A DNA stretch of 64,000 bases from Takakia lepidozioides (taxonomy: Eukaryota; Plantae; Bryophyta). The position numbers were made by a program, and so were the translations under genes. Numbering within the stretch: the first letter of the stretch is position 1; each line of letters starts with the position of its first letter. Below, piece by piece: positions 1 to 60,000 of this stretch. The notes beneath the pieces were generated by a model. That model was not told the DNA's origin, made no database searches, and saw nothing but the letters and a program-made list of their open reading frames with translations. The stretch is taken from NCBI GenBank assembly GCA_030704615.1, contig CM060732.1:31682001-31746000 (forward strand), given 5' to 3'.

Positions 1-461
1 CCGTAAATTCCATCAACTCACGACGACTCGACCCACTTCAAGGCAAAACTCGTGTCCACCTAGGATGCGCGTTTTCTTGGCAATTTTTTGTCGTATTCAA
101 TTCGGGTCCAAACTCAAAACACCTGCCCAGATGCACGTCCAGGGAGTTTCATCGTGAGTTTAGGTTGAGAAGGCTCGTGACAACATAGGGTCCCGCTGTG
201 AGAGCACTCGCCTGCAACTCACGGCCAATCAATCTGTGTTTAACGATTCCTAACAAATTTACAAAAATTTGCGGAGGGAAAGCAAACTTACGTCGAAATT
301 GCGTTTTTTAACAACTCACGATGAAACTCAAGTCTGAATTTACGGATAACTCTAATGTGTCAGCTTAACATGGATTTTCTCATTTTTGGATCAGATGTGT
401 CGTCCAGATCTATGCATGCAGTTGGCCACCTCACCCTGGCTTCTTTACTACACGTCTTGTG
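1..461. mobile_element. Possible end of a CACTA/EnSpm-like DNA transposon (subterminal repeat field)
   Basis: AACTCACG/CGTGAGTT motif repeated in both orientations (about 15, 153, 217, 313); region ends ...ACACGTCTTGTG (CACAA on the minus strand) just before the PPR fragment. The other end is not in the window. Confidence 0.3.
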
Positions 462-473
462 TTATTCTTAGTC

Positions 474-601
474 TTATCATGGAATATCATGATCGTATAA
501 TATGCACAGCATGGGTGTGGCAGGAAAGCCTTGGATACCTATGAGCAAATGATATGGGAAGGGGTAACACCCGACCAGGTCACATTTGTGTGTGTTCTTA
601 A
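474..601 (+). pseudogene. PLS-class PPR gene fragment, left half of the piggyBac target site
   Basis: Translates SWNIMIV*YAQHGCGRKALDTYEQMIWEGVTPDQVTFVCVL(N); in-frame stop; ends at TTAA 598-601. Confidence 0.85.
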
Positions 602-1403
602 CCCCTCAAGGACGAGGCGACCCGTATCGGGTCGGGTCGAAATTTCGATTGGATGATAAATGCGCAGATCATGTCGGATGAAAACGATTCCTGAACGAAA
701 AGTGTAGCCTATAAATATTTACGGCCCCCTGTGTTGATTGCACCCTAAAAAATCTAATCCCCCGCCGTCAGGATTTTTTGGAATCTAGAGGGGTACCCAA
801 AATCATGTGGTTTTGGGCCCGCCAGCAGGTTGATTGGCAGACGTGGCAGGCAGGATTGGGGGGTGGGTGGGCGTTTGCCGGCAGTGGGTGACAACAGGGG
901 GCTGCATGTCCGCCCGTGCGGACAACGGCGAACTCCTGGCACGCATGAAACGCCAGGCACGTGGCCCAATCAGGTGGCGGGTCGCGGGGGCGGGAGATCC
1001 TCACCCGCGCAGGGTTTAGGTGCGTGGCCCAATCAGGTGGGAGATGGCGGGGACGGGAGCTCCTCTCTCGCTCTCTGCATTTTGCATATCGTGTCCTAAG
1101 TGCTACGATTGTCTCCTTGTAATCGAGCTTTTGCTTCGTTCTTTCTTGGCTTTTGCTTCGCTTTGGCTTTGCTGCGTCGATCTTAATATTTTGCCTATGA
1201 TTGCTCCGTTTCATTTTTTTGGGAGCTCATGTGCCGCTGTTGAGGAGCAGGGGGTGGCTGCACGTCTGTTCCGTTCGCTGGGATCATCCTCGACTTTGCC
1301 TTTACAGCGGCTCCTTCTCTTTACACCTGCTCATTACCTTCGTGTTGGGGCGCATGCGCAGTGATGGCGCTTCACAAGTATTGCGTAGCCATCTAACCAC
1401 TTA

Positions 1404-2131
1404 TGTCGCGCACCTCACTTCGGTAAACTCCCCTTCAAGTCATAGTTACTCGCTTTGATGCGCGCGCCTGACTCCCAACCTGGCCGCCGGGCCAACTTGG
1501 AGCTTTGGCTGCTCACCGGGACATAACGGTCCCCTTCGCTCCCCCACTAAACCCTCCACCTATTTGGGCCTAGTGGAATTCCCTTTGGTAGATGGCAGTC
1601 CGGAACAGCTCCCCACTCTTTGGTCGCTTTCCGGCTCGCTCGCTCGCTCACTCACTAGTTTTTGGTCACCAACGGGCTTGCACCGTTCTCGGGGTTACTA
1701 CTCCCTATATATACTTCTGTAGCTGTCCGCGGGGGTTTCACAACCAGCCATGCCATTTTATGGCGAACCACCACGAAACCCCTCGACTCCCAGTGATGAG
1801 TCGCGGTGAGTTTTGGCCCACTCATCACGGCCCCTATGGACCGTGCTGAGTCCCAAGACTCCCCACGACTCCCACCACGAGGTCTCCGCCCCCATGGTGA
1901 GTCCTATGCCACCCCCACTAAGTCCCGCTAAGCTACCACCCCTTGTGGAGCCACCCCCACCGCAACCCGGTGTGCGGGGCTCCACCTAGTGAGCGCCTCC
2001 GCCTCCTTGAGTGCCTTGGGCACTCAAGGGTGCTTCAGGCCCCCCATCCTATCGCTGCCGCTACCCCCACCACAGGGGCAGCCCCTTACGTGTCCCGACC
2101 CCCCCTGCCCTCAAGGCAAAGGGCCGCGACA
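1404..2131 (-). repeat. 3' LTR of the gypsy element (728 bp)
   Basis: Near-identical to 7653-8377 (about 7 substitutions and two small indels by eye). Confidence 0.97.
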
Positions 2132-3036
2132 CACACCCCTACCAACAGGGAGTCGATGTCCTCATCGACTTGTCCATTTTGTAGAAACGAACATCCAAGT
2201 TGTGGCGTCCCACATCAAGGAGTTTGTTTCCGTACCATGGCGTCCCATGGCAAAGAACCAAACCCCACACTTGACTCTACTCTCCACTAGCTAGTTCGGC
2301 CGATTTCCTCCAAGTCCCGGCCAAGGGTGGAGCCTCTCCAGCTCCTCCCAGTGCACTCTTCTTGGCCTACTTCAAGGCCAATGAACGATCCTCCCCGAGG
2401 ATCGAATCGCCTTACTGCAACAACATTGCTTGCGACCACTCATGATGCCGCTTTTGGCATCATCTTGAGCAAGGGTTCACCTGGAACCCTCTTTGACTAG
2501 GAAAATAACCTTGAACCAACCGTGCGCCCCAATCACTACAATTGGGTCCGCCTTGGAATGCTGGCCTGAGGTACGGGAACACGCCGAAGCCGCACTACGA
2601 CTTCGTCCCGAGGCTACACGATTATAGTACGTGAACGGAAGCACGTGGCTTCCGCGTTAGCCCGCACTACAAGGCGACCCCCTCGGTAGCGCAGTGCTAG
2701 TACGTGCACGTGCCAGGTGCGCACTAGCACGTGAACTCCCAAAGAAGGCGCAAGTTTCCTTGCCCCTCGGATGGGGGTCACCCGATTTCGGCACTACGCA
2801 AACACACGATTAACCCAATTTACCTCTCCCACTTTTATAAGCTAGCATGCATTCTACACACTAGCCAACCATACCATGCATCACCATTCCAAACAAAATA
2901 GGACGCACAACATTTGGAATCCATTTCATTTATAGCACGTTTTGTACAATACAAGTTTTTGCAATCGGGTTCCTAAGCTAGCTAAGCCGGGCTAAGCATG
3001 CATTTCCTCCCTCACGCTCCAAGGTTGATGTCCCCA

Positions 3037-6000
3037 TCAACGCTTCTTCCGCTTTTGAGGTCGCCCTTCGAAAACTGCAACCGCCTCGGATGCGTTTCCC
3101 ATTTCTGAGGCACGCACCCAAGATGCCTCCACTTGATGATAGCCCTTCCATTTGACGAGATACTCCGTTTCTCGGTTCTTGAACCTCCTCGACTTAAGTA
3201 TTGCCTCCACCTCGTACTCAGGTTCATTTTCATGATCCAACAGCATAGGTGGCGGACGCAACACTTGATGCCGATTCGGACGCGCTTCATCTTTGAAGTA
3301 AGGCTTCAAAAAGGAGACATGGAATACTGGGTGCACCTTGCTGTTTGCCGACAGCTCCAATTCATACACATCCTCATTCATAACCTTCCGAATGCAAAAT
3401 GGTCCCGCATACGGAGGTACGAACTTCGGACTCACTTCCGGAGGTAGTCGGAAATTCTTGATGTTCAACCAGACCTCTGTGCCTGCCTCAAACTTCACTT
3501 CCCTCCGCTTCCGATTCGCCTGCCTTTCATACCGTTTCCTAGCTTTGGCGATGTTGTACTTTGCGAGCTTCAACAAACGCTCGCGTTCTTCCGGTACGGC
3601 CGCTACTGCCGGTTCCTCAACGTCCTGGGCGGCCCAACTTGTCGGCACCAGAGGTGCTTTTCCATAGACCAATACGAAAGGGAAACTCCCGTTGCGGAGT
3701 GTTCTGTGTTATTATAACAGAACTCTGCCGCGTCTAAGTGTTCCACCCAGTCTGTTTGGTCTGCCGACACGTAATTCCGCAAGATCTGCTTCACTACGGA
3801 ATTCACTCCTTCTGTTTGGCCGTTGGTCGTAGGTCGGAAGGCGGTGCTCATCTTCAGCCTTGTCCCCATCTTCTTCCAAAGTGCCCTCCAAAATTTACTC
3901 GTAAACTTTGGATCGCGGTCCGAGACAATATCCTTCGGGACTCCATGATGCTTTAAGACGTGGGCGAAGTAAAGTCGCCCTGTCTCTTGCGCCGTTGCCA
4001 TCTCCTTGGTGGGGATGAAATGGCCCATTTTACTGAACCTATCCACCACCACCATGATTGCATCGAATCCTTTTGACAGTGGCATAGCAGTCATGAAATC
4101 CATCGAGACGCTTTCCCAAGTCCCCTCTGGAATCGGCAAGGGTTATAACAGCCTCGCTTGCTTTTTGTACTCGCTCCGGTTTTGTTGGCATGTGGTGCAT
4201 GTCTTGACATACTCCTCTGCCTCCTCCCTCAGTTTGGGCCAGAAATACTCTTTCTTCAAGAGTGCCGCAGTGCGCTTGGCTCCGCCGTGGCCCGCAAGCG
4301 GGCTATCATGGCATTCTCTCAAGAGGCTATCTCTGATCCCTCCCTTCGGCATGTAGAGACGTTTTTGCTTATACCGGAGCAACCCATTTTGCAAGTGGAA
4401 CTGCGATTTAACCCCCATTCTCAAGTCCTGCATCACGGACTTCGTCAGCTCATCCTTCCGGCAAGCCTTCCGGATCTTTCTTTGGAGCGCCGTCTCGCCC
4501 CTGTACACCAACAGGAGCTGCTGCTTTCTACTTAAAGCATCGGCCACCACATTGTCCCGTCCCGGTTTGTACTGGATATCCACGTCGAACACCGCCAAAG
4601 TATCTTGCCACCTAAGTTGTTTTGGGGACAACTTGGACTGCGTGGCAAAATACTTCACTGTGACATTGTCCGTGAACACCTTCAATGGGTTGGAACCAAC
4701 ATAGTGGCGCCAAAGCTCAAGGCAATGCACCACCGCCTTCATCTCTTTTTCGTGCATCAGCCACCGTCGCTCCACTTCATTCAGTTTCTTACTTTCGTAA
4801 GCCACTGGACGTCCATCTTGCATAAGTACACCCCCAATCGCGAAGTCCGATGCATCTGTATGAATCTCAAATGGACGATTGAACTCCGGGATTTTCAAGA
4901 CTGGAGCTTCCGCCATCCGCTGCTTCAATTCAGCAAAAGCTTGGCCACAAAATGTGTTCCATACCCAGACTTTGGATTTACACAGAAGGTCCGACAGCGG
5001 CCCCGCGATCTTGGCGAAATTTCTCACATACTTCCGGTAATAGGAGGCGAGTCCTAGGAAGGATCGCACTCCCGGGACCGAAGTCGGAGGCTCCCAGTCC
5101 AAGATCGCCCTCACCTTTCTGTCATCCATTTTGATCTCATCCTGTGTAATCACATGCCCCAGAAACTCCACTTTTGTGACCCCGAATTCGCATTTTGAAG
5201 CTTTGGCATACAGCTTCCTTTCTCGCAATTTTTGGAACACCCTTTTTAGGTGCTCCAGGTGTTCTTCCTTTGTTTTCGAGTACACCAAGATGTCGTCGAT
5301 GTACACGATCACAAAGTCATCCAACCACTCCTGGAAAAGGCTGTTCATCAGCGTGCTAAATGTCGCTGGTGCATTGGTGAGCCCAAAAGCATCACCAAGA
5401 ACTCATATGAACCATACCTTGTCCTGCACGCGGTCTTCTCCTCATCTCCTTCCGCCACCCGAATTTGATGATAGCCGGAGCGCAAGTCGATCCGGCTGAA
5501 ATACTTCGCTCCTGCCAACCGATCGAAGAGGTCGTCGATCCTTGGCAAAGGGTACCGGTTTTTTATAGTCACCTTATTCAGAGCCCTGTAATCGACACAC
5601 ATCCGCAACGTCCCATCCTTCTTGTCTGCGAATAGCACCAGGGCTCCGTAAGGTGACTTACTCGGCCGGATGTACCCCTTTGACATTAGATCTTTGAGCT
5701 GAGTCTTCAGCTCGACCAACTCTCTGTGGCTCAACCGGTAGGGCGCCTTGGCAGGCGGTTCCGATCCTGGTATCACCTCAATCTTGTGGTCAACTCCTCT
5801 TCGCGGTGGCAAGCCGCTTGGCAAATCCTCCGGCATCACATCATGGTATTTCTCCAAAATTCCCTTGATCCAATCTGGGCTCGGCTCTCCATCGCCTTCT
5901 CCCTTCACTTCTCTAATGTAGAGCAAAAACTGGGGCTTGTGTGCCTCCTCCACGGCCCACTCCCTTGCTGATAGAAGGTTTATTCGCCCTCCCACGGGTT

Positions 6001-6580
6001 TGGGCGTTTCCGAAACTCGTAAGACCTCACCACCATTCCAACATGGCAGCGTGACTACCCTCTTGCGGCCATCTATGACCGCTCCGGATTTGCTCAAAAA
6101 GGTCATCCCCAAAATGAGATCCAATCCATCGATCTCGCAGACGGTGAAGTTCTCACTTCCCTCCCAACTCTCCAGTTGAAGAGGAACATCGAACGCCAAC
6201 CTCGTCGCCAATTGCGGTTCTCCTTTGGCAGAACGCACCTCAATAGAGGCCCCTACGTCAGTTGTCGGGAGTCCCAGCTTTTGTGCCGTTGCCGGTGTCA
6301 TGAAAGAGTGCGACGCTCCTGTGTCCACCAACAATGACACGTTAGTTCCGGATGTTATCCCATCCACGAACAATAAGTGACTCCCTTTACGCAATGCGCC
6401 AGTTTCCTGATACAACTCACAAGAATATTTGCCTACCTTGCAAGTCCCGGCGACCACCGCTTCCACCAAGCGACTGATGGTATCTTCCGACAGTTCTGTG
6501 GTCGCCCAAGTCATGTTCAATTGTCGGGGCTTCGTGCACTTCTTAGCCATGTGCCCGGGCTCCCCACAATTGAAACACAC
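3037..6580 (-). pseudogene. Gypsy pol (zinc knuckle, protease, RT, RNase H, integrase, chromodomain), disrupted
   Basis: [14 protein letters not shown]; [10 protein letters not shown]; YIDD; TDASD; HHCC (CHD...GHG...CTTC); SMDF/SDRD/GQTE; GPF; EYEVEAIL...YLVKWKGY. Split across ORFs 5348-6580, 4143-5348, 3603-4139 and 3037-3672 by frameshifts and one stop. Confidence 0.93.
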
Positions 6581-6598
6581 TCCATCAAAGGTTGCCTT

Positions 6599-7597
6599 CT
6601 ATCGGCCATAGGCCGCTCCACCCGCTTTTCCTTTCGAAGCACCGGGTGCCGCCTTGACTTGTGATGGCCCTCCCTTTGATTCCCACATGTTGTTGTCGTC
6701 GCGTGGCCTATCCCACTTCTTTTCCGGTCGGAAGGAGTCACCTTCCCGCCGGGTCTTCATGTGGTTCAGCTCCGTACGGCCTTGTCTTTCACCCCTAGGG
6801 ACATCTGAGAAACATTCAGCCCTCTCAATTGCCTCGTTCAAAGTCTTAGGTGGCTTCTCTTCCAACTTCCGCCTGGCCCATGGGGCCAACCCCGCCACAA
6901 AGTTGAAGACCATTTCTGGTTCCGCCATATCCGCGACTTCGAGCAACAGCACATTGAAAGCCTGGACATATCCCCGAATGTCATCTGTTTGCTTCAAATT
7001 CCTCATCTTGTCCCGGGCAAGCCAGGACGCATTGAGGGGCACAAACTGTCTCTTCATCAATTCCTTGAACCCACTCCAGTTCAAGGTTTCCGGACTTGGA
7101 CCTCGGTCGTGAAGGCGTTTCTGCCACCATTGTTGAGCATAGCCCCTCAAATAGGTGGGAGCCACTTCCACCCGATCCTCGTCACTCAATTTGGCCGCCC
7201 GGAAGTACTGTTCTAGCTCCAAGAGCCAGGTGTTGAGTGCCTTCCGATTTCGGACGCCCTTGAAGGTGTCGGGTTCCTTAGGCTTCACCTTAAACTTTGC
7301 CTTAGTGGAAGTGGCATTAGCCGCCTTCAACACGTCTTTCAACGTCCCGCCAAATTGCGCCAACAACCCTTCCCAAAAGGCTGCCGGCATGGGAGGCATC
7401 TCTTGGTTTGTCGGAGCTCTCAAGGATTCCTCGGGCTCCGACTCCTCGGATTCATCCCGCTCTTGAGCGGCCTCGTTTTCGGAAACATGCATCGCTTCCT
7501 CAAACGGCCGCCTCGGTGACACGTCGCCCCCATCGGGCTCACCAGGATCATCATCTTTTGGGCCGTTCCGCTTTCGCTTTGGCTTGCCCGACCCCAT
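6599..7597 (-). CDS. Gypsy gag (retrotransposon gag domain)
   Basis: PKEPDTFKG...WLLELEQYF...LRGYAQQWW...LKQTDDIRGYVQAF...FVAGL; likely start MGSGK near 7597. Confidence 0.88.
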   Translation of the reverse strand: MGSGKPKRKRNGPKDDDPGEPDGGDVSPRRPFEEAMHVSENEAAQERDESEESEPEESLRAPTNQEMPPMPAAFWEGLLAQFGGTLKDVLKAANATSTKAKFKVKPKEPDTFKGVRNRKALNTWLLELEQYFRAAKLSDEDRVEVAPTYLRGYAQQWWQKRLHDRGPSPETLNWSGFKELMKRQFVPLNASWLARDKMRNLKQTDDIRGYVQAFNVLLLEVADMAEPEMVFNFVAGLAPWARRKLEEKPPKTLNEAIERAECFSDVPRGERQGRTELNHMKTRREGDSFRPEKKWDRPRDDNNMWESKGGPSQVKAAPGASKGKAGGAAYGR

Positions 7598-7652
7598 GAT
7601 TAGGCCAATCCCAAGGACGATCGCGTACTGAACTCTAAGCTTTGATACCAAG

Positions 7653-8377
7653 TGTCGCGCACCTCACTTCGGTAAACTCCCCTTCAAGTCATAGTTACTC
7701 GCTTTGATGCGCGCGCCTGACTCCCAACCTGGCCGCCGGGCCAACTTGGAGCTTCGGCTGCTCACCGAGACATAACGGTCCCCCTTCGCTCCCCCACTAA
7801 ACCCTCCACCTATTTGGGCCTAGTGGAATTCCCTTTGGTAGATGGCAGTCCGGAACAGCTCCCCACTCTTTGGTCGCTTTCCGGCTCGCTCGCTCACTCA
7901 CTAGTTTTTGGTCACCAACGGGCTTGCACCGTTCTCGGGGTTACTACTCCCTATATATACTTCTGTAGCTGTCCGCGGGGGTTTCACAACCAGCCATGCC
8001 ATTTTATGGCGAACCACCACGAAAACCCTCGACTCCCGGTGATGAGTCGCGGTGAGTCTTGGCCCACTCATCACGGCCCCTATGGACCGTGCTGAGTCCC
8101 AAGACTCCCCACGACTCCCACCACGAGGTCTCCGCCCCCATGGTGAGTCCTATGCCACCCCCACTAAGTCCCGCTAAGCTACCACCCCTTGTGGAGCCAC
8201 CCCCACCTCAACCCGGTGTGCGGGGCTCCACCTAGTGAGCGCCTCCGCCTCCTTGAGTGCCTTGGGCACTCAAGGGTGCTTCAGGCCCCCCATCCTATCG
8301 CTGCCGCTGCCCCCACCACAGGGGCAGCCCCTTACGTGTCCCGACCCCCCCTGCCCTCAAGGCAAAGGGCCGCGACA
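7653..8377 (-). repeat. 5' LTR of the gypsy element (725 bp)
   Basis: Adjacent to the PBS; matches 1404-2131. Confidence 0.97.
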
Positions 8378-9153
8378 ACTTATGCATTTGCATTTGCTTG
8401 ATATTGTCTGCCTGCTTTGCTTGATTATGTTTGTGCATTGAATGTTTGTGGTTTGTGGGTGGCAGGGATTCCATGGCGCCGAAACGCAAGGGATCTAAGC
8501 TGCTTGAGCCCCCACCACCTGAGCATACAGCTGCGGCAGAGGTTATAAGGGCGTGGGCGCAGGAGGAGCAGCATTGCACTGCAGAGCAATGCAAGGTAAT
8601 TCTAGGTTGTCTTTGTTTCTGACCTCTTTGCCTGTTGCCAAACGTTGGCCGCGCCATCCTCGTTCACATAACTTTCGATTTCTCTGGCGGAGGCAAGTGG
8701 CTTCTATTCTTGGTTGGAGAGAGAGAAGAGAGGAAGGAGAGAAAGAGGGGTTCAGTGATGCTGTCAATTCCGTTTTGAGAGAGGATGTCTGGCCTGATAT
8801 CGACAGTCAGGGATTTCAAGCAGCAAGCTCGTGCCAAACGGCAAATTCCTGCAAGTGTGAGAATGGCTCCCAGGGGTGTGGTGAGGAGAAGGAACAAGAC
8901 ACACCGGAGTGCTTGTGGGGGTGAGTCCAGTCACGATTTTTGTTCTTGCGTTGATTGTACAAAGTCTTAGGTGTGCTTTGGGAGTGTTGCATCCGAACAC
9001 CATGCATATCGTTGGAGTCGTTGGAGTCTCTGGTTCCTGTTCTGCTCCTGGCGGCGAACACCATGGCCCCCAGTCTGAACTTGACGATTTTTTTTTGATG
9101 ATGATACTTACGTTGGGGATTCTGCCGACGAGGCAGACTGGGACACTGACCTT

Positions 9154-10730
9154 TTGGGAATGGAAGATGACGGTGACGAGGCACCAAACCTCGCTTTTGA
9201 GCAGCTGTTCCAGCCTAGCTCATGGGAAAAGTGTGTTGAAAGTGAATTTGTTAGTGATAGGGAGGCATTCACTGGCCCTCAGCCTAGTCTCTGCCTCCCG
9301 GAGATGAAGGGTTCTGCTCCAATTTGGTTCTTTCTTTTGTTTTGGAGGCAAAGTGTGCTGGAGAGGGTATGCAGGGAGTCGAATGCATATGCATCAGAGC
9401 CTTTGGGTGAGAGCACACGTGGTGGGCCTAGGTGGAAGCTTTTGACGGTGAGTGAGCTCCGAGCTTGGATTGGCATCTGTGTTTTTATGGGGATAAAGAA
9501 ACTACCTAAAACTAGATGTTACTGGCAACACTCCGAGTCTTTTTTCTCATGCCCTATCATCCGCAAGGTCATGACCCTGCGTATAAACCCTAAGCGATAC
9601 TTCGTTGTTTGCATTTGGTGGACAATGCCACTTTGCATGATCGTGGGAGCCCTCGATTTGATAAGCTCGGCAAGATTTAGGTGGGCTTATGATGAGGTGG
9701 TTGATAGGTGCAAGAGCCTGTGGAATCTCAACAAGATGTTGACTGTTGACGAGGTGATGATCCGTTACAAGGGGAAATACTATGCGCCTAAGAAGCCATG
9801 CAAGTGGGGCATCAAGGTGTGGGCGTTGGCTGACTCGGAGACCAGCTATGTGTATGATTTTCAGGTATACTGTGGGAAAAATGCAGGGGGCCCTGATGGT
9901 GAGAGGCTGAAAAGTGGGAAGGGTAAAGGCTATGATGTGGTGTGTGGGCTTGCCAGGGACTCCATGGTTTGGGCATGTAATTGTCACTGATAATTATTTC
10001 ACTTCTGTTCAGCTTTTGTATGACTTGGCCAAGCTTGGTACATGGGCCACTGGTACAGTTCGTGTGAACAGAAAAGGCCTCCCTCCCTCCTTGCTATCCA
10101 AGAAAAAATCCAAGACTGTCAAGCAAGGCTAGTCCTGGTACAAGATGCATGTTTCCAGGGAACTTGCGGCCGTGTTGTGGTGGGACAAAAAGGGGGTATT
10201 CATGTTGTCATCTGCAGCTACACCAGCATGCAAGCCTTCTTCTCCTGTTACTGTGAGATGCTTTGTGGGACAGTAGAGAGTCTTGGTGCCATCTGTGCCT
10301 GCCCATGTGCAATATCAAGCCTATATGCGAGGGGTAGATGTCCAAGACCAGCTCCGGGGAGCATATACTTTGCAGCTGCGCACTAAGAAATGGTGGCATC
10401 GTCTATTTTTCTTCCTGATGGACAAGACCTTGGTGAATGCATACATCTTGCATTCAGCCCATGCCAGAAAAGATGGGTCGGAGGCCCATGACGCATTTGG
10501 AGTTCAATCTTGCTGTGGCATACGCCTTGACAGCAGGTCAGTGCACTGACAACATGGACAGGAGGGAGGATGGCTCTTGCACCTTTGTGCATCAATGCCT
10601 TCACACACCACAACGGCGGTTGTGTGTTGTATCCCATGTCCACACTCACCACTACTGCCCTGGATGTGATGGCAGCCATATGTGCCTTGGTTCTTGCTGG
10701 AATCATGCACACTGCCACCCAACGAGGTGA
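9154..10730 (+). pseudogene. piggyBac (PGBD/DDE_Tnp_1_7-type) transposase, frameshifted
   Basis: FFLLFW...SNAYA; WKLLTVSELRAWIGI; TVDEVMIRYKG (D1); KPCKWGIKVWALAD..YVYDFQVYCGK; TDNYFTS (D2); YMRGVDVQDQ (D3); KKWWHRLFFFLMD..VNAYIL; C-terminal Cys/His-rich RRLCVV...CPGC...CLGSCWNHAH. Several frameshifts and a stop. Confidence 0.92.
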
Positions 10731-11240
10731 CTGCTGCATACCTTGGATTCTCTTTGGGTTGTTGGTGGGCTGGCAGGTGTGCTCTTGGCGGCTGTGGATC
10801 AGTGCGTGTGTGGGTGTGCTGGGTGTGTGGGGCAGATCAGGGGGTTCAAGTCCCTCTCAGTTCATAGCTCGTGTTTTTTAGTATGTTTCTTGGTGTGGTT
10901 GTGGGAAGCGGTTGGCCGTTGGCAAGGGAGAACACTGAAACGTAGGGTGGAGGCCCCCGTGACTTGGTTTGCGATGACGTGGCCGGATTTTTTTGGCCGG
11001 AAATGTCCACCGGCTCCGGCAATTCTTGGCCGGAGTTGGGATTCAAGTAGGGATTCGGTTTTTTGGCAATCTTTGCTTGCAAACAGCTTAGAACGTGGAA
11101 ATTTTTTTCCAGGGTACTCGGTAGGTAGGCAAACAACAACATGACCAGAGGAATTTGGATTCCCTCACAAATTGCCCCACATTTGGGGGGATGTGGGGAT
11201 CCCATGAGAGAAATTGGCATTTTGACCCCCCCTCCTTTCC

Positions 11241-12018
11241 GGAAGATAATAGGAATAATGTAAGAACTTAATGCACATGTGCAACCTTTGACATGATGAT
11301 ACGCCGGTTTCCGGCATGTCAAATCTTCCCCACCCTCTCTTGAGAGTGACATGGAACTGAAGGAGTGTCAACTCCAGTCGGGGTTACATCGGGTTACACA
11401 ACGAGCCGTGTAACTCCACTTGGGGTTACATCAGGTTACACAACGAGCCGTGTAACTCCACTTGGGGTTACATCGGGTTACACGACGAGCTGTGTAACTC
11501 CACTTGGGGTTACATTGGGTTACACGACGAGGTGTGTAAATCCACTCGGGGTTACATAGAATGGAGTGTAACTACACTTGGTCTCAAAATTTGACTAAGT
11601 CCAAATGTGGCTAAGTATAAAATGGACCAACCAGAGTTACATGAGAAATCAGGGTTATAGAGGGTTACATCAAATGGAAGGTTACATCGATCGGGGTTAC
11701 ACTAAGTGGAGGGTTACATCAACCCAGGTTACACTACCACAGCCTCCCATCAAGAATTGAACCCACAACCTCGCCGCCTGCATTGTTATCACCTTGTCAT
11801 CAAGCTATCCACCGCAACTTGGATCCCATCGGATTCATAAGTATTTTCACACTTGGATCCCATCTGGATTCATAAGTATTTAATAGTGAAACGAGGTAAT
11901 GTGGGGTGGGAAGGATTTGACAGGCCCCGCCGGAGGAGCCCAGGTTGCCGGAATCCGGAGAAAGTACTGTCAGATCACAAGCGTCCATTAAGTTCTTACA
12001 TTATTCCTATTATCTTCC
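11241..12018. repeat. Perfect 33-bp inverted repeat pair (11241-11273 / 11986-12018) enclosing a GGTTACA array
   Basis: GGAAGATAATAGGAATAATGTAAGAACTTAATG and its exact reverse complement. Confidence 0.9.
11365..11735. repeat. 42-bp tandem repeat (about 4.5 copies, 11365-11557) plus dispersed GGTTACA motifs
   Basis: Unit GTGTAACTCCACTTGGGGTTACATCGGGTTACACAACGAGCC; internal palindrome TGTAACTCC-ACTT-GGGGTTACA. Confidence 0.9.
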
Positions 12019-12421
12019 CTGTTTTCCCATACAAAGCAACCATTATGCATTTTTGGAATTTGGCTCTCGAATTTTGGGAGGCTTTGCTGTGGGTGCCATA
12101 TAATTTGAATCCGGGTAGGCTGTATCAATGAAAAGTAAAAAAGGTTGGCAATCTCCTTGGTCAAACCAAATTTTCATGTTGAAAATATATCCAACAAAAA
12201 AAAAAGCCTAGAACTTTTGTTATAATCTTCCAAATTAGACGGTCAAATCTCCGAAATTTTTACTGCAGGTGCATGAAGTAGGTAGGATGACTTTGGAATG
12301 GTGGTGGAAAAAATGAAGGGGAGGTTGGGGGGCCGGGATGTAGACCGCTCCGCAAATTGCGGTGAGGTGAGTTGGGACTTAGGCGTTTTTGCGAGTCCCC
12401 CCTCACTGTCAATGAACGGTT

Positions 12422-15400
12422 TTCCTCATATATTCTCCTTGCACCTCCTAACAGGATTCTTCTTCGTCCCTGACCTCTCTCCCTTCTATTCCCTCTACTA
12501 GGCATTCCTTCTTCTCATCTTTCATCCGGCTACTCCATCTCTACTGCTCATTAATGAGCCACATTCTTTTGGCTGCGGCGCGGCTCCCCAAGACAGTTCT
12601 CTGGAAGTGTTTGCACTTTGCATGTATTGCCATTTCCTGAAGGCTGCGGGGCTTTTTATGATTCTGATCTGCACTTCCAGCTAATGCCTGCAAGCATCGT
12701 CCCTCACACTTCATGAAAGTCTGCGGAGTTGAAGCGGAACTGACCTGCGCAGCTCACCCTGGCCGCTTTCCATAACGCGCTGGCCTACATTGCGGCGATG
12801 GAGTATCGGGAGGTGATCTCTCCAACCCCCTCTTTATGACTCCATTGCAGCTCGGTTCTTGTTTGCTTCCTCCCTTGTTCTGCAATTACTTGGTCAGGCT
12901 GCATTTCCGGCCAGCAGCGGTAGCATTAACAAACAAGTCCCCGTGTAGGCACTCACAAGTTGCTGAGTGCAGTCCTGGTCCCTCCCACTTTGCTAGTGTT
13001 TCGGCTGCTCATCTCTTGCTTCAATTCGATCCTTCCTAGATATCCTCACTATGGCCTAGAGGATCTGTGGTTGTGGCTGGAGGATTTCTGGGCAGGACCT
13101 TTGCTTCCTATCTTTTGCAGGAACCATGAATGCCAGAGGAGCACCAAGTCATCGAGGCAGCAAAGGCGGTTCTGCTCGTCGATCAGGCTCAGCTGTGGCA
13201 ATCGGCAGTGGGAGGTCAAAATGGATAATGAAAAACTACTCCACTTCCAATGGCTCAAGGGACTCAATCTTGGGCAAAAGTCCAACCCAATCGGCCGATG
13301 TACACTCCCCTAGTGAAGAGGACGCCGTGTGGGAGGATTCCATTCCACAGGAGGTGACCGACCGGCCAGTTCTAGTCTTGGACAAAGAGAAGCTCCGATC
13401 GCAGGAGCTGAAGCTCACTCAAAGGGGGATTTTGATCTACTTCCCGGGGAAAACCAGACCCAGGCTGTGGGTACGTCGCTGGATTGTTAAACATCTTGGA
13501 GCTGACGGAGGTCTTGCCCACCACTACAGCCTCTCCATGGGCAAAGGCTTCTACCTGGCCTTGTTCAGTTCCCCTGAAGAAGCAGAGACACCTCTGAAAT
13601 TTAACACTCAGCTGTCAGCTGTCAAGGTCTTCCTCTTCCCCTGGACCCACGATTGGGGTCTCAGGAAAGGCGTGATGTGGAAGCCAAGGGTTATTGTGAT
13701 ACCCTTCCTTCCGGCTACTTATATGTCCTCTCTCCCTGAAATAGGCGCCAGCTTCGGCACCTTCATGGGCTCACTGAATGTTTTTGAGCCGATGCAGGAC
13801 AACATAAGGAGTGTGGATAATGAAGCGGCAAACTTTGACTTCTACAAAGATGGAGGGGTCCCTAAGTTAGTGGTCCTCATGCCGGAGAATGAGCCCATTG
13901 GTTCCTCAATCAAGCTTCCTACCCTCGATGATTCTTTCATCGTCATAGCGATCAAAGAGGAGCTAATATCTGCAACATGCTTCATCTGTAATGGAGAAGG
14001 TCACCTGCGTTCCAACTGCCCTAAATGATCCAAGCCACTCGATTTTGAGGCCCCCAAACCTCCTCTTTCGTCAAATACCAAAGCGGGCTCTTCGTTTGAT
14101 GCAGCAGCGGTTACTGTTTCCTTGGAACACGACGAAGGAGGTTTCCAGCCGGGTCAGTCTTCCAAAAAAAGGAAACGCAGTGAGGACTCCACCAAGTGGC
14201 TCCATCCTAATCGGCCATACGATCTCCATCCTGTAATCATAAAGGACAAATGGGCTTCGTTTCCTTTTTCACAGGAGGAGCTGCACCTTTTGGATAGCAC
14301 CAGTCTCGCTATCTCCTTCCTCGAGCTACACTCTTTCCCAAGGAGACCGCAGCCTGAGCCCCAGGTTCGCCGTACGCAAGGGACAGGGCAGCTATCTGTG
14401 TGACCCTTCTCGTCTACACCTTTTTTGACAACTACACAAACTTTTGTGTGTCCGACGAAGGGGAAGGATTCCGCTCTGTTGGGTCACAGAATCGATGGCC
14501 AAAGATTTTGGCGTTGGGAATGAAAAAGGAATTACTTTGTGCCTCAAGGCTCAAATTCTCAGGGAGTTTTTTCCCCAAATCTCCCTCTCCCTTCCTCACA
14601 TTCTCAACATAGGAATTATGGTGGAGAACAATCCTGCTCTGGTCAATCTGGCAGTCGTTCATGTGCTTCCCATCTTTCATGCCATTGACCTGCAGCTATC
14701 GGTCAAACCTCTCAAGGGTTTGTGGGCAGATGGATTTGGCCTGTCCTGCAGGGTAAATGATCCCAACACCTAGGCTCGCAGCTCCTTAATTTTGGAGGAA
14801 GGGCAACGCATGGTGACTGAACTCACCGGTCTGCAGAAGCTCAAGGGTCCAGCAGTTCAAGCACCACAGGAAGATCACCACATCCCCACTGAAGTCCAGC
14901 CAAATAACAGAGAAATCGTCCTATATAATGAGGCAGACATGCTGCACTCCTCCAACAGGGCACACAACAGTTTTGAAGAAATGAAGCAGCCCAAGGAGAC
15001 GGTGGACTTGCCCCCGGCGCTGTTTCCAGGTCTTCGGAAGAACGTGGCAGGCTGCTCATCAATGATTTTCACCAGTCCTGGGGGGAAAATGATACTCTCA
15101 GAACCATGCTTCCCAACTTGCGATTCTATTGGAAAGTCACCACTCCAGCTCATTGGACTGTCCCCTGGTGAAGGAGACGATGCAGATTTTAATTGGAGAC
15201 ACAAGAATCCTCGTGTGACCAAGTTCAGGACCCAGTTGAGGTTTTAGCTTGTAGTACTCGGCCCTCTTTCATCTTTTCTCCTGGCTTCCTGTCATGGAGG
15301 AGGATACAACCTCCTTGAACTATCTGAAGTCTTCTTAATCTTCCCTGCCCATCATCATTCTTAGGCTTAGTTTTATATTACTTATCAGGCCTAGATTTCT

Positions 15401-15644
15401 GGTTCCAGTTTTCTCTTGGTGCACGGGATGAGACATCCCTGCTCCCTCCCCCCCCCCCTTCTTTTTTCTGCTTGTAGCTCGAATGCTATGGTTACGGGGA
15501 TGTTCCCCCTCGGTGAGCCTCACGGCCTCCCTGGTGGTTATGTTTTCCACCTTTTTGTGAACATTTCTCTGATTTAATTTGATTAAAAGGGCCTCTGTCC
15601 CCCTTTTAAATTTATTGAAATAAATTAATATTTAAAAAAAAAAA
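12422..15644 (+). mobile_element. ORF1-only non-LTR (L1-derived, HAL1-like) retroelement
   Basis: Poly(A) at 15634-15646; candidate 7-bp TSD AACGGTT (12415-12421, 15645-15651); L1-type ORF1; no endonuclease or RT motifs seen. Confidence 0.7.
13126..15247 (+). pseudogene. LINE ORF1-like protein (DUF4283/RRM-like region plus CCHC knuckle) with long C-terminal extension, disrupted
   Basis: MGKGFYLALFSSPEEAE...LFPW...IPFLP...IGASFG...CFICNGEGHLRSNCP; the same frame resumes after the TGA at 14026 (ORF 14122-14403), then continues through frameshifts to 15247. Confidence 0.75.
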
Positions 15645-15738
15645 AACGGTTCATCCCCTCGGATGTTTGTCAAATGGGAGATATACCCTCATTGGTGAGG
15701 GTATGTCTGGTTTTGGACGGGGCCCACCAAAAACGGGG

Positions 15739-16030
15739 TTAATGCTTGTGCGAGCCTGGGAGCCCTGGAGAACTGGAGAAAGGCAAAGTGGTCCATGGTG
15801 ACATCAACAGCCCAAATTGCCCAAAATGTCATTCTGGAGACTACCCTAGTTGACATGTATGCCAATTGCGGTAGCATGAAGCATTCAACAACATGGCTCA
15901 ACAAAATGTGGTCTCACGGAACGCCATGATTGCAGGATATGCCCAGCATGGGTGTGCTAGGGAGGCCCTCCAAGTCTTTGAGCAAATGCAACAGAAAGGC
16001 TGGAAGCCAGATGGTTTCACCTTTACAAGT
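15739..16030 (+). pseudogene. PPR fragment, right half of the piggyBac target site
   Basis: NACASLGALE..KGKVVHGDI...LETTLVDMYANCGS...MIAGYAQHG...; 8-bp duplication CTGGAGAA causes a frameshift. Confidence 0.85.
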
Positions 16031-16337
16031 GCTTTCCCTCTGCCAGGCATTTACTCTTGATGCACTCCTGCAAGTGACAGACTTAAGTATCAGAGTCTGC
16101 CACAATGCCTCCTTGGTTCAAAGTGTGCAGTGCCTCTTTCAGTAGCCCTGCCTCACATGGCATCCTCACATGCCCAGAATCGCCAGAAGAGGCGCTGTTG
16201 ACTCCCTCTCTTGGTCCTCTTTCGGAAGCTGTGGTCATGGTGGAGGTGCCTGATTTTACCGACTGTGCAGCTGCTGCTGCTTCCAGTTGACCATCTACCC
16301 ATGCAGGTTTCTTGTAGCTACTCATCGAAGGAATCAT
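16030..16337 (-). pseudogene. N-terminal fragment of a PPR gene, paralogous to 46840-47040
   Basis: Nucleotide match such as TTCAAAGTGTGCAG(T/C)GCCTCTTTCAGT at about 16117 and 46922; LKEALHTLNQ motif in both. Confidence 0.7.
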
Positions 16338-17561
16338 AGGTAAGATTATGCTTGAAATCCGGCCCTCTTGGATGACACTCCATCCCTGCTCCTTCAGCTA
16401 TCCTGCCTCCGCACCAATAATGTAGAGATCCTTTGCCTTGCTCCTAGCAGCTGACAATGGCAGCCTAGATTGTTCTTGCAAACACCCTAACTTATCACAC
16501 ACTAGTTCCTATGCTGAATTGCTCCAAAGACTTTAAAAATGTGCTGGGGATGACAATTTCCAAGAAAGATTTGCCATGCATCTCGTTCTCTGTCTCTCTC
16601 TGTAATCTAACAGGCACTCACCTTTCTGCTTCGATTGTCCCACCATTGACTGGGGTCTGAAAAGTATTCATTCGAAAGCTTCTACTGACCTCTGTTATCT
16701 GTTTTTAAATACTTTCCTGTTGGCACATTGGCAGTAACATGTCAAAATCAATCCAAACCACAATGAGCTAACTTGGAGAATTCAACATGAAAACTTGGGG
16801 ACGACCTGAAATGTGTTGAAGAAGAAGATGCCCCCACCACATGGTCCTTGACCTAGTGTCAAGAAAGCAGCTAGCTTTTCTTTCACCCACGGAGGATTCA
16901 ACGGACCATGTACCCAAAAGGACATCTTTTGTGTGCTGCTTCTGTCTGGAGGCGGGTGATCTCGGATTGGTCTGTGAGAACCACCACGGGGCAGCTGAGC
17001 TTAAACACGGCCTCTTAAGACCAAGCTGATCCTCCCAAGTATCTTGTAACACATCATGATACTGACAGGAAGAGCCCACATTTGCATGCCCGACAAACCT
17101 CTTCAGATTGTACATTGTGAAAGCCATACCTTGAGATTGTGGTTGTCCCACCATCGTGAAGGATCTTTAAAAAACTGATGCCAGCGCTGCTCCATGCAGC
17201 TCCACGCTAGACCTTTCTGCCCGGAAATTCAACAACATCAACATTTCATTTTGACAAGTTCCTTTCCGTAGAGTGGTGGTGAGCTTTGCAGCAAAATTCA
17301 TGCAAGTCACTTTGGGCTCGATTGGACTGTACACAGTCAGGAACATACAAACATGTGCCATAGCCACCATATGCAAGAGACTCTGTCGTCTACGCATTGC
17401 CAAGCGGGATGGTTCTTTCACCTCCACAGCACAGCCCTTTAATCCTTATCTATATATTTATACATCATTATCTACAGATACAAACGTAACTCGGAATTGT
17501 GAAACGTGCCATCGGCCTAAGTCTTCCCCGCAGCCCCGGTCGCTTGAAGAGTGAAGGAGGA

Positions 17562-45084: not shown

Positions 45085-47040
45085 TCAGCTCAGCTTGGAT
45101 TTCCTCAATTGTGGATGAATGTCTCCTAAAATATGCTGTGGATTGCAGTCAAGTAGACCTTTAACCACACGTTTGGCTAGCTCCACGTCACCATGAATTC
45201 TGCAGGAAGTGAGCAAGGCACCCCACACTGGGATTTTCTTAATGAAGTCCTCAGCATCATCCAATCGTCCTGCGCGGCCAAGAAGGTCAACCATGCAACC
45301 AAAATGCTCCACTGTGGGTGGCAGGCCATGATCTCCACTCATGGAACGGAAGTAGTGACGGCCTTCATCCACTAGGCCCACATGGGTACATGCAGAGAGA
45401 AGACATATAAAGGTACTGCCGTTTGGCTTCAAACCTTCATGTTGCATTTGTTCAAACAGTTGGAGGGCCTCGATCAGCGTGTTCCATGTGGCCACATCTC
45501 GATGAGCCATATTGTCGAACATATGACGTGCATCATATATGCTCCCACATTTGGCATACATGTTGACAAGCGCACTTTCCAGAATGATATCTGGAACAAT
45601 TCCAGCTTTGCCAATGTCAGCATGAACATCTTTGCCTTTTTCCAGGGCTGCAAGGCTGGCACAGGCATTGAGAACACAAATGAATGTGACCTTGTCTGGC
45701 ATCACCCTTTCACAAATCATTAGCTCATAGATCTCCAAAGCCTCTCTACCCACCCATGCTGACAGTATCCTGTGATCATCGCATTCCAGGAAACCACATT
45801 TCTTTGAGCCATACTGTCGAACAATCGACGTGCATCAATTATGCTCCCAATTTGACATACATGTAAACAAGCGCAGTCTCAAGAATGATATCTGGCACAA
45901 TTCCAACTTCAATGATGTCAGCATGGACATCTTTCCCCTCTTCAGGGCTGCCAGCCTGGCACACGCATTGAGCACGCAAATGAATGTGACATTATCTGGC
46001 TGCACCCCTTCCTGAATCATTTCCTCATAGATCTCCAATGCCTCCCTACCACAGCCGAGCTGGCATAGCCTGCTATCATCAGAGTCCATAAGACCACATT
46101 TCGTTGGGCCATATTGTCAAACACTTGACGTGCATCCTTTATGCTCGCGCATTCGGCATACATTTCAACAAGGGCAGTCTCCAGAACACTATCTGGCACA
46201 ATTCTACTCTGCTGATGTCAGCATGAACAACTTTGCCCTTTTCCAGGGCTGCCAGGCTAGCACAGGCATTGAGAACACAAATGAATGTGACCTTGTCTGG
46301 CATCACCCCTTCCCGTTTCATTTGCTCATATATCTCTAAAGCCTCCCTACCATACCCATGCTGAACATATCCTGCGGTCAAGGCGTTGCATGATACCACA
46401 TCTCGTTAGCCATATTGTCAAACACATGACGTGCATCCTTCATGCTCCCACACTTCGCATACATGTTAGCCAAGGCAGTCTCCAGAATAATATCAGGTGC
46501 AATTCCAGCTTTCATGATGTCAGCATGAATCTCTTTTCCCTTCTCCAGGGCTCCTAGGCTGGCGCATGCCTTCAGAACACAAATGAATGTAACCCCATTT
46601 GGTGTTACCCTGTCCTCTATCATTTGTTCATAGCTCTCAACTGCCTCCCTACAAAATCCATGCTTGGCATATCCTGCCATCATTATAGTCCACGTAAATA
46701 CATCTCGTTGAGACATTTTGTCAACCACTTCCCGTGCATCCACCACACTCCCGCATTTGGCATACATGTTGACAAGGGCAATGAGGAGAAAAACGTCTGG
46801 CTTGAATCCAGTTTGGGTAATGTGGGCATGCACCTGCTTCCCTCTAGCTAGGTCTTTAATTTTGATGCACTCCTGCAAGAGACAGATGTAAGTATTGTAG
46901 TCGGCCGAACTGGCTTTTTGGTTCAAAGTGTGCAGCGCCTCTTTCAGTTTGCCTGCCTTACATAGTGAACAGTCCTTGTTTATTCCCTCTCTTGCTCCTC
47001 TTTCAAAAGCAGTGGTGATGGTGGGTTTGCCTTGTGAAAA
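45085..47040 (-). pseudogene. PLS-class PPR gene with partial E domain, frameshifted
   Basis: Repeated VTFICVLNACASLAALEKGK / ALVNMYAKCGS motifs over several frames; EHFGCMVDLLGRAGRL...VWGALLTSCRIHG; no DYW domain seen. Confidence 0.9.
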
Positions 47041-57000: not shown

Positions 57001-60000
57001 ATTCGTAGTAGATGGTGACTGACTGTGTTGCCAAGTCACAGGGTGTCCAAGTGGCTGGATGCTATGCTCCTTCACATGGGTCTGACACTGCACTTTCTGC
57101 TATCATGCAGGTACTACAACTATAGTTCTGTCCTCTTTTAGAACGGTGTTCTCTATAGTTTATAGCTTCACGTGAACTTTTCCCTTGAGGGGGGAATGAC
57201 ATAGACACAGCTAAAGTCGGAGGAAATCACGTCATAGAGAGCTAGAAGCGCTGGACATGTCAAGTGAGTTTCCATTATAGATGTATCTGGAGACGTACAT
57301 AGGTAGAGCCAAAGGCAAAAGACAGACTGAGAGAATGGTAAGAGCCATCAAAGCCATGGGGAGACACTGCAGCCGACACAGAAACACAAGTCATTTATAA
57401 TTTGTGGAGCCTACATTCACTTCTCCTCTTAACTAATTGACAATTTGACAACTGCAGGTTCTGCTCCGATGTTGCATTCTCTCTCCATTGGTGTGTGATG
57501 TTCTGGCAGGCATTCCCATACAAGAGCCACCCTCTCGGAGCCCAACGAGTGGAGGTGGGGATGGTACTGCAGTGGGTGCCATTTTCAGAGTTCTGTCAGT
57601 TCATAGCTCCCCAGTCATAGCAACTGCCAATGGGGAAAAGACAGGCCCAGGCACATTGAAGGAAATGGATATAATCAGCAAGACAGGGACAACTGAGGTT
57701 CTTATCACCCAGGCATGCCTGACCCTCTCAGCTATTGCACAGGGACTAGCTGTCAGGGGCCGACGTGGGGCGTCATGTATGCTCACAGGCTCACAGCCAA
57801 AACAGCGAGCCCGACTGGCAGCATTGGCCCAACAAGCCTCGACAGACAGTATACCTGGAGACTCTCTCCCCACCCCACAATGCGCAGCTGCCCAGCTGGC
57901 ATTGTCATCCATACTGGCACTTGAGCAGGGGCTGGACACACTTGGTGGAGGAGCTTCATGGGCAGCTGAAACTGCCCTCTCTTTACTCCCCTCTTTCTCC
58001 ACCCTCCACAATTTCCTGAAGATTCCCTACATAAATAGTCAAACAGCTGCCTCAATTCACAATGATGAGCAGAATGTATCTGGCAGAACTGCTGGGATGT
58101 TGACTAGTTGGCATGGTATCAGAGACGGGTGTGTAGGCATCCTTGAAGCCAGGCTCAGGTGGGGTGGGGTTAGCGCTACTGAACAAGGGTGTACTCTGGG
58201 GTTCCCTCTTCTTCTGGTAATGCTGCTTGCTGGAGGCTTGAAATGTGTAGAGGATTGCGATGAGCCTACTGGGCTGGGGGAGGACATAATTGGACTGTCC
58301 CCCATTGGTGTGACTTGGGGAGTCTCTTCCATTGCCCGTACTCTCCCGGCGGGAGGTTACCGGGATGTTTTGTTCCGACGGGAACCCTTGCTTGCCTTGC
58401 TGAGTTTGATTGACAGAGTGCATCTCTCGCACCTCCAGCTCTGGGAAGGGAATGGGGGCGGTGGAGAAGGCTTACGGACAATTGTTGATGGGGTTGTTAG
58501 TGTGTTGGAGTTTCCCTTTCTGCAGCTACAATCTGCTCCAGGGTCTCCGTCAGCCTCAGCTTCGGTACTTAGTGTGCCTGTTCTGGGGACCTGCGCACCT
58601 GGTGGGAGAGGGGGGGTTGACCCAGGGGGGGAGCTCGCCAAAGCCATGACTGCCAGCATGCCACAATATTGGCAACTTTTGCAAGAGGTGCGTGCAGTAT
58701 ATTGCTATGTTTTGTTAGCCTTCCCTCTTTGCCTTTTTCTTCCTGCTGAACTACTTGTCATCTGTTTCTCACCTTGGGTAAAACTCTGAGCATTTGAGCA
58801 TTACCCTTTGCTGTCTATCAACCCAGGTTACTAATCTTTATTGAAGGTTCTCATCCTCTTCATTTCTTGAAAGGTATGAATTTGACAGAACATGCTGAAA
58901 TTGGAGATGCTTTCTCATAGGTCTTCCATGCTGTGAAAACATATACAGGTGCATGCTGCAGCACCTCTTGTGCGATGCTTGGATCTTCTGAGCATGGATG
59001 ATGTGGGGAGACCAGTTGGGCTGATAACAAGAATGGTTCAGAGTTCCAGGCTCCTGGCCACTGAGGTGGTGACAAAGGGTTTCCTTGGGACATCTCTCAT
59101 GGCCAAGCTGCTGCACCCTGCGTCCCCTAGGGATGTCATTCGTGATGTGCTTATGACAGTTTCCAATCTTGCTCGCATGTCCAAGGTAGCCTCTCCCTTT
59201 ATCCAATTCTAGAATACTTAATTTACTCCATGTCATGTGACAAAAGAAAGTGCAGAGTATGTAGACACGTGATTGGAAGCTTTTTGGAGTGGCTGTATCC
59301 ATTATTCAAACATTGTGAAGCTTTTTCTTAAAACAAACTTACAGGTCACAATTTTGCCACATAAATTGCAAATTACATTAGCAAAATACAATCAGATAGA
59401 GCACACTTTCATCCTCATTGAGAAAAACCATTCAGTTCATGTTGGCTGAGAATGAAGTCTCAAACAAATAATGGGTGGCAGGAGTTTTACGAAGCAATAG
59501 GGCAGGCGGACATATGGGAGGCATTGAAGGCATGTCTCGACCACCCAGATGCCAGCATTCGATCCAAGGCCTGTAGTGCCCTCGGCAACATGTGCCGCCA
59601 CACTCCCTTTTTCTATGATGCTCTGGTAACAGTTTGAAATCTATAACTCCAACTCTCCTTGCAGTCTTCCTTCTTGAGGTGCTATTTGTTTTGTATTTTG
59701 AAATGTGGGAACTTGTCAAGTTATAAACAATGGATAATGAAAGCATTTGTCTTGTTTGTGAGCATACTGTCTTTCAGCACATAACTGGACAACAGTGACA
59801 TGGAAATTCTAACCTGCTGTGTCTGCCATCGTCATGCAATTCCTCCAGATCAAACATGACATTGTAAACCTTCTCATTGACCGCTGTGCTGACCCAGACC
59901 GACACACGCGGAAGTTTGCATGCTTCGGGGTACTTTTCCAGCCCGCCAATGACACTGAAACATGCTAGAGAAGAGCTTCCTTATGTAGCCGTTCTTCTGG

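Follow-up and report, generated by a model that had tools for sequence, protein, structure and literature searches.

A probable fossil copy of a multicopy piggyBac-superfamily transposon in a pentatricopeptide repeat pseudogene of Takakia lepidozioides

We analyzed a 64,000-nucleotide stretch of the Takakia lepidozioides genome (GenBank assembly GCA_030704615.1, contig CM060732.1, positions 31,682,001 to 31,746,000 of the forward strand; this whole stretch is referred to here as the window), in which a pentatricopeptide repeat (PPR) pseudogene is interrupted by a 15,137-bp insert carrying a broken piggyBac-like transposase gene. Takakia has a 325-Mb genome with expanded PPRs (PMC13120521). The insert (positions 602 to 15738 of the window) is bracketed by two copies of TTAA, at 598 to 601 and at 15739 to 15742, and its termini read CCCC (602 to 605) and GGGG (15735 to 15738), as a first-pass annotation of this DNA had proposed. 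To its left lies a PLS-class PPR repeat of the host pseudogene that ends in ...VTFVCV (470 to 597, plus strand), and to its right the PPR repeat resumes with ACASLGALE... (15743 to 15900, plus strand) and is frameshifted soon after.

Joining positions 579 to 601 to 15743 onward gives VTFVCVLNACASLGALE, in frame, and excision of the insert together with one TTAA yields a continuous PPR repeat in a single frame (...GVTPDQVTFVCVLNACASLGALE). The rejoined site is colinear over 272 nt with a PPR paralog on the minus strand at 46131 to 46395, with no indel at the junction, where TTCTTAATGC of the rejoined site faces TTCTCAATGC of the paralog. Because the PPR repeat is restored without a gap at the junction, a single TTAA was duplicated around the 15,137-bp insert, and the earlier claim that the flanks rejoin in frame to a PPR motif like those at 46.2 to 46.4 kb is borne out by the gapless alignment. 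Rejoining and paralog alignment thus define both flanks and both target-site duplication copies, to which translation adds for the left flank and the sequence itself for the TTAA copies. The host PPR is a pseudogene, with one frameshift directly after GALE and another further on. The region at 45085 to 46926 (minus strand) and the insert flanks contain clustered PLS-class PPR repeats or pseudogenes that closely resemble one another; the paralogs at 45.1 to 46.9 kb retain longer open reading frames (ORFs), whereas the copy hosting the insert is frameshifted.

The transposase pseudogene lies at 9002 to 10730 on the plus strand and was delimited by Pfam matches, tblastn with three protein relatives (P0001, P0003, and P0004), a frame map, alignments to structures in the PDB, and an alignment of its Cys-rich tail. 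The hidden Markov model check that had been suggested for 9154 to 10730 gave strong matches to the Pfam family DDE_Tnp_1_7 (PF13843), with an E value of 6e-26 at 9154 to 9990 (92 bits against a cutoff of 22.4) and of 3.8e-9 at 10283 to 10549, and homologs of the transposase number 5,979 at E values of 1e-3 or below. Searches with phmmer matched the solved piggyBat transposase (9c0f; E values of 5.4e-10 and 1.2e-5) and also that of the Trichoplusia ni piggyBac (6x67). The first Asp of the catalytic triad (LTVDE) aligns with LSLDE of piggyBat and the third (RGVDVQDQ) with KGVDRADQ, both within regions covered by alignments to the two solved transposases, and the second (VTDNYFTS) aligns with VCDSFFSS of P0004, which confirms the DDD transposase named in the first-pass annotation. 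At the C terminus, the piece at 10467 to 10727 can be aligned to six relatives on the pattern RR.C..[C>S]...C..C.....C...C...H, with four invariant Cys columns and one tail Cys replaced by Ser in the studied copy; the Cys-rich domain named in the first-pass annotation is a putative one.

The reading frame of the transposase is broken in several places. The coding path traced by tblastn with the best full-length relatives runs through frame 1 at about 9091 to 9957, frame 2 at about 9962 to 10507, and frame 3 at 10467 to 10688, with frame changes at about 9957 to 9974 and at 10467, in-frame stops at 10130 to 10132 and 10274 to 10276, and the frame 3 stop codon at 10728 to 10730. The lesions comprise at least three single-base frameshifts and two C-to-T stop codons. 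A start at the ATG at 9002, with an extra frameshift in the T-run at 9088 to 9096, is plausible and would give a protein of about 575 amino acids (aa).

The nearest relatives of this transposase are all unlabeled sequences (from Logan, ENA, and JGI), and the clusters that contain the nearest ones yielded no taxon; a profile built from the closest four recovered 44 more, all environmental, and the only labeled matches were distant ones from an insect and a lamprey. In a FastTree phylogeny, for which the broken transposase was read through with an X at each break, the studied copy falls in a 13-member clade (P0001, P0003, P0004, P0009, P0247, P0261, the P0229-P0235 group, and the studied copy) with an SH-like support of 99, apart from the insect and lamprey sequences, albeit with long branches and with the join to P0261 flagged as a possible long-branch artifact. 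Several relatives come from JGI/Logan sample series that also hold a bryophyte FUSED-kinase-like gene, a circumstantial association. Transposase look-alikes in the ESM Atlas were considered as a clue to origin and set aside as uninformative, since they comprised only generic arthropod piggyBac clusters. Within the clade, P0001, P0003, P0004, P0247, and P0231 (loci L001 to L004 and L012 to L014) share the short Cys-rich tail type with the studied copy, as well as an upstream ORF1 module that is either separate or fused at the N terminus, but they are only 30 to 41% identical to it and their transposases are 720 to 1,164 aa long with large N-terminal regions. One of them, the 1,164-aa P0004, sits in an apparently complete element of about 6.1 kb (L002:4961-4990 plus L003:1-6157) that starts with TTAA and CCCTTTAATGTGCC..., ends with ...GGCACTCTTAGGGG and TTAA, and has an ORF1-like module fused to the N terminus of its transposase.

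In the studied copy, the ORF1 remnant with this conserved module occupies 8553 to 8921 (plus strand, frame 3), upstream of the transposase, and was recognized by BLASTP, tblastn, and alignment. It matches the ORF upstream of P0247 in L013 (BLASTP E value of 7e-9), and tblastn placed matches at the corresponding location in L012, L013, and L014 and, for L002 and L003, within the N terminus of P0004. The module follows the pattern ...LS.P...W....R(Y/F)LW.R.A..LGW.(E/D)RR..F...V...(L/I)R..., has twelve invariant columns in the alignment, and is present in at least four clade members (P0004, P0231, P0247, and the studied copy), although the N terminus of ORF1 is truncated or degenerate in the studied copy. 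A PDB profile search with the module returned noise only, with E values of about 1. An alternative model, in which 8473 to 8595 followed by "gt" would be a first transposase exon and the start of an intron, was dropped, 8553 to 8921 being homologous to a separate upstream ORF.

Compared with the T. ni piggyBac (IFP2; 6x67/6x68) and piggyBat (9c0f), the studied element has the same TTAA duplication and CCC/GGG ends, the same DDE_Tnp_1_7 core with three Asp residues in ..DE.., ..DN(F/Y).., and ..GVD..DQ, and a putative C-terminal Cys-rich tail like theirs, in a transposase of about 575 to 600 aa. It differs in that the match is distant and partial (phmmer E values of 5.4e-10 and 1.6e-7 over query residues 79 to 267), the spacing between the two tail Cys pairs is shorter, an extra conserved ORF lies upstream, the host is a land plant, and the terminal repeat of the family itself contains TTAA (consensus CCCC-TTAA-GG).

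Other copies of the element can be followed in public sequencing runs. Six runs of one organism, derived from three samples in three studies, hold 28 to 54% of the sampled words of the window, and contigs of four runs (X1, X4, X5, and X7) were aligned on positions 9850 to 15849 (6,000 nt); X5 is only a guessed RNA run, and X7 is a separate environmental run labeled as a plant metagenome. Across the transposase region, the DNA runs yielded many contigs at 80 to 99% identity, with 8 to 12 distinct contigs per site carrying an alternative base. At position 10130, the first base of the first stop, every other contig has C and the studied copy has T, and at 10274, the first base of the second stop, 8 of the 9 covering contigs have C. 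Relative to the studied copy, the others also have an additional base at 9956 and at 9970 and one fewer at 10468/10469, which are the places where its frame breaks. Many further private differences likewise have T in the studied copy against C in the others, an excess that we infer to reflect deamination of a methylated, silenced repeat.

The same contigs resolve the ends of the element. Its left terminal inverted repeat, CCCCTCAAGGACGAGGC (602 to 618, plus strand), is unique in the window, and self-alignment of the two ends of the studied copy found nothing beyond 4 nt (score of 13 against a shuffle mean of 11.9), because the right repeat has lost 14 nt between 15734 and 15735 and is reduced to GGGG. 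Contigs of other copies (5 in X1 and 3 in X7) continue past 15734 with AGGCTCGTCCTTAA, GGGG, and TTAA, so that their right end reads ...AAAAC, AGGCTCGTCCTTAA, GGGG, and TTAA before passing into unrelated flank, and the left repeat is the reverse complement of this right-end consensus at about 15 of 18 positions. Since the right end of the other copies is the inverted partner of the left end, both boundaries of the insert are validated; the terminal repeats of the family are at least 17 nt long, start with CCCC, and end at TTAA. In L002 and L003, TTAA is followed by CCCTTTAATG..., which resembles the CCCCTTAAGG... of the family, with a matching right end. The related copies in X7 extend over 15602 to 15742, and as they end in ...GGGG and TTAA, the family or its host occurs in the X7 sample. 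Inside the repeats lie a left subterminal noncoding region (619 to 1398, plus strand), marked by a direct repeat and by ORFs without Pfam signal, and a right subterminal region with the residual GGGG (15645 to 15738, plus strand), defined by the contigs that continue past 15734. The direct repeat consists of two 54-nt units (955 to 1008 and 1018 to 1071, with 63-nt spacing and 81% identity), which may be putative transposase-binding or promoter elements; each unit includes GGCCCAATCAGGTGG. When metagenome contigs were searched for TTAACCCCTNANGGACGAG, 16 matches came up, none of them similar to the element in DNA or protein, and these were discarded as due to chance.

That the studied copy has no inverted repeat beyond CCCC and GGGG would also be expected if the structure were a composite, in which the TTAA-bounded unit is some other TTAA-targeting or nonautonomous element and the transposase relic is a passenger or a nested fragment. 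The 3' noncoding parts, which are deeper in summed contigs than the transposase and indicate that end-sharing deletion derivatives probably exist, point the same way. However, the left 17 nt are the inverted complement of the right-end consensus, which was read from contigs colinear with the element's own right subterminal region, and the contigs that join 12296 directly to 15645 add up to a depth similar to that over the transposase. The transposase is not surrounded by another pair of ends, and the arrangement of ORF1, transposase, and 3' region matches that in L012 and L013. A composite origin is therefore very unlikely in our estimation.

The run guessed to be RNA bears on whether any copy is expressed. 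In X5, depth over a miniature inverted-repeat transposable element (MITE) nested in the insert is about 2.4 times that over the transposase; the corresponding ratio in the DNA runs is about 45, a contrast in keeping with RNA. A 1,151-nt contig from X5 is 95% identical to the studied copy over 9850 to 10677 and has the family versions at the lesion sites. This is suggestive of another family copy that is probably transcribed, and the data overall suggest that better-preserved, probably transcribed copies exist. A transcript of this kind would likewise suit a domesticated, PGBD-like host gene derived from piggyBac instead of a transposon, but such genes are usually single-copy, lack transposon ends, and are conserved, whereas here we find frameshifts, stops, transposon ends, a TTAA duplication, and many diverged family copies, and we consider domestication hardly credible.

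Much of the length of the insert is due to nested elements. The first-pass annotation had counted two nested insertions and a core of about 4.9 kb; we find three (a chromovirus, the MITE, and a poly(A)-ended retroelement), and the core is 4,810 bp after subtraction of the retroelement and of the 6,979 bp taken up by the chromovirus and its duplication, or about 4.0 kb without the MITE as well. The Ty3/gypsy chromovirus, on the minus strand, spans 1399 to 8382 including a 5-bp duplication, ACTTA (1399 to 1403 and 8378 to 8382), as defined by alignment of its long terminal repeats (LTRs) and by its domains. The element proper (1404 to 8377) has LTRs at 1404 to 2131 (728 bp) and 7653 to 8377 (725 bp) that are 99.0% identical with TG..CA ends, and its order of gag, protease, reverse transcriptase, RNase H, and integrase with a C-terminal chromodomain is that of a Ty3/gypsy chromovirus. 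Adjoining its element-sense 5' LTR is TGGTATCAAAGC, which differs at one position from the primer site for initiator tRNA-Met. The chromovirus is young, with all domains recognizable and pol split over several frames.

The second nested element is a high-copy 778-bp MITE at 11241 to 12018, delimited by its inverted and direct repeats, its depth, and loose contig ends. It has 36-nt terminal inverted repeats (97% identity) that start with GGAAGATAATAGG..., at least four 42-bp tandem repeats in its interior at 11370 to 11579, and a possible 9-bp duplication in which 7 of 9 positions match. Summed over contigs, the DNA runs cover it about 45 times as deeply as the transposase region, and positions 11241 and 12018 themselves are marked by loose contig ends that run into varied AT-rich flanks. 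A tRNA-like stretch lies near 11740 to 11810, where ARAGORN calls no tRNA, and no tRNA or Rfam match was found within positions 1 to 17000. The MITE separates two parts of the piggyBac 3' noncoding region (plus strand), at 10731 to 11240, where multicopy contigs are colinear with the transposase region, and at 12019 to 12296, which other copies join directly to 15645.

The third insertion, at 12297 to 15644 (plus strand, 3,348 bp), is a poly(A)-ended retroelement that other copies skip exactly, with one contig in X1 and one in X4 joining 12296 to 15645. It encodes a 300-aa ORF (13126 to 14025) that ends in a CCHC zinc knuckle (Pfam zf-CCHC), and no reverse transcriptase was found in 12297 to 15644; protein look-alikes in the Atlas are DUF4283/CCHC proteins of Streptophyta (score of 0.89), which we treat as a lead only. 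The retroelement is near single-copy in the DNA runs, with its last approximately 200 bp far more abundant than the rest, and the contigs of X5 that cover it show 0 to 3 differences, one of them matching over 1,494 nt with a single difference. The insertion may be a nonautonomous retroelement that is transcribed, or else a DUF4283/CCHC gene that was recently retrocopied.

A 2017 survey described piggyBac as recorded across eukaryotes except plants. A superfamily long thought absent from plants (PMC5381638) and represented here by nearest protein relatives that all come from unlabeled metagenomes could raise the suspicion of contamination or misassembly, with a piggyBac from an associated fungus, alga, or animal mis-joined to plant DNA. 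Against this, the insert splits a plant PPR repeat at one TTAA, which is perfectly duplicated, it carries a plant-typical chromovirus and a DUF4283/CCHC-type retroelement, the runs of the same organism that hold 28 to 54% of the sampled words come from independent studies and samples, and the private changes are mainly C to T, as expected for a silenced resident repeat. We assign such an artifact a next to negligible probability, and the earlier conclusion that this is a genuine transposition in plant DNA holds on the strength of the PPR flanks, the plant-type nested elements, and a family that is multicopy in same-organism runs.

The premise that piggyBacs are rare or absent in land plants is partly out of date, as a 2025 mining study reported piggyBac transposases from land plants in its "Group 4" (PMC13461360), which spans fungi, land plants, and algae and, like the studied family, includes land-plant hosts; it is the only published statement we found that places piggyBac in land plants at the transposase level. 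PiggyBac has also been listed among the MITE superfamilies of angiosperms (PMC10004981) and among superfamilies present in all groups studied (PMC4438587). The insertion is thus a further land-plant case of a superfamily already reported there. We found no published description or catalogue of this family in the literature on bryophytes, Physcomitrella, Takakia, or Sphagnum.

Taken together, the insert is very probably a fossil copy of a native, multicopy piggyBac-superfamily transposon that inserted at a TTAA in a PPR gene or pseudogene of a bryophyte genome. Several points weigh against this interpretation. The two ends of the studied copy share 4 nt only, and the terminal repeat is established solely through contigs of other copies; these contigs were aligned over 9850 to 15849 and the left boundary lies outside that range, so that the expectation that other copies end at these TTAA boundaries is confirmed at the right end. 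The contigs suggest a family on the order of ten or more copies, with the proviso that contig depth is not copy number. Pfam detects neither the Cys-rich domain of the tail (PF13842) nor ORF1, and the left-end ORFs gave no match either. Finally, no protein exceeds 41% identity among 1.84 billion representatives, and no intact family member was read.

We propose that an element some 4 to 4.8 kb long, with terminal repeats of at least 17 nt, the upstream ORF1, and a DDD transposase of about 575 aa with a Cys-rich tail, would have inserted by cut-and-paste at a TTAA in a PLS-class PPR gene or pseudogene. By homology, the transposase would bind the terminal repeats, its RNase H-like DDD site would cut and join the DNA, and integration would duplicate the TTAA. 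The copy would then have decayed through C-to-T stops, single-base indels, and loss of 14 bp of the right repeat, and would have been invaded by the MITE, by the poly(A) retroelement, and, most recently, by the chromovirus with its 99.0% identical LTRs. The analysis directly shows where the insert begins and ends, its TTAA duplication and empty site, the family of the transposase and its lesions, the nested elements, and that other copies exist; the catalytic mechanism and the order of events are our reconstruction. The transposon had been called complete, a description that fails in the functional sense given the frameshifts, the stops, and the 14-bp deletion, and the studied copy is presumably neither autonomous nor likely to be mobilizable, judging from its sequence.

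Two further features of the window lie outside the insert. At about 26.3 to 29.0 kb there is a second Ty3/gypsy element, which is more AT rich than the chromovirus and distantly similar to it, and a FUSED/TIO-like kinase gene has a large exon at 57488 to 58789 whose best labeled match is from Sphagnum, at 65% identity. This match fits a bryophyte host and, together with the abundance of PLS-class PPR repeats in the window, agrees with Takakia.

Whether the family is still alive is a separate matter. It is possible, if on balance somewhat doubtful, that intact, transcribed two-gene copies, with ORF1 as a helper next to the transposase and with CCCCTTAAGG... ends, still transpose in this early-diverging moss. 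If so, they would constitute a plant-native, TTAA-specific cut-and-paste system belonging to a deep clade at most 41% identical to anything labeled, with a helper gene that is absent from the insect and bat elements employed as tools. The suggested use as a vector does not apply to the studied copy, which is dead, and would apply only to other, intact copies, whose existence we infer; an intact copy, if one exists, would qualify as a candidate footprint-free vector of plant origin and would offer a route to the role of the upstream ORF. The studied copy is itself a dated fossil, useful to annotators of the family as a reference for the boundaries and the empty site. Flanked by TTAA, and with an empty site that can be reconstructed within a plant gene family, it provides clean, contamination-proof evidence of a resident, amplified piggyBac lineage in a land plant.

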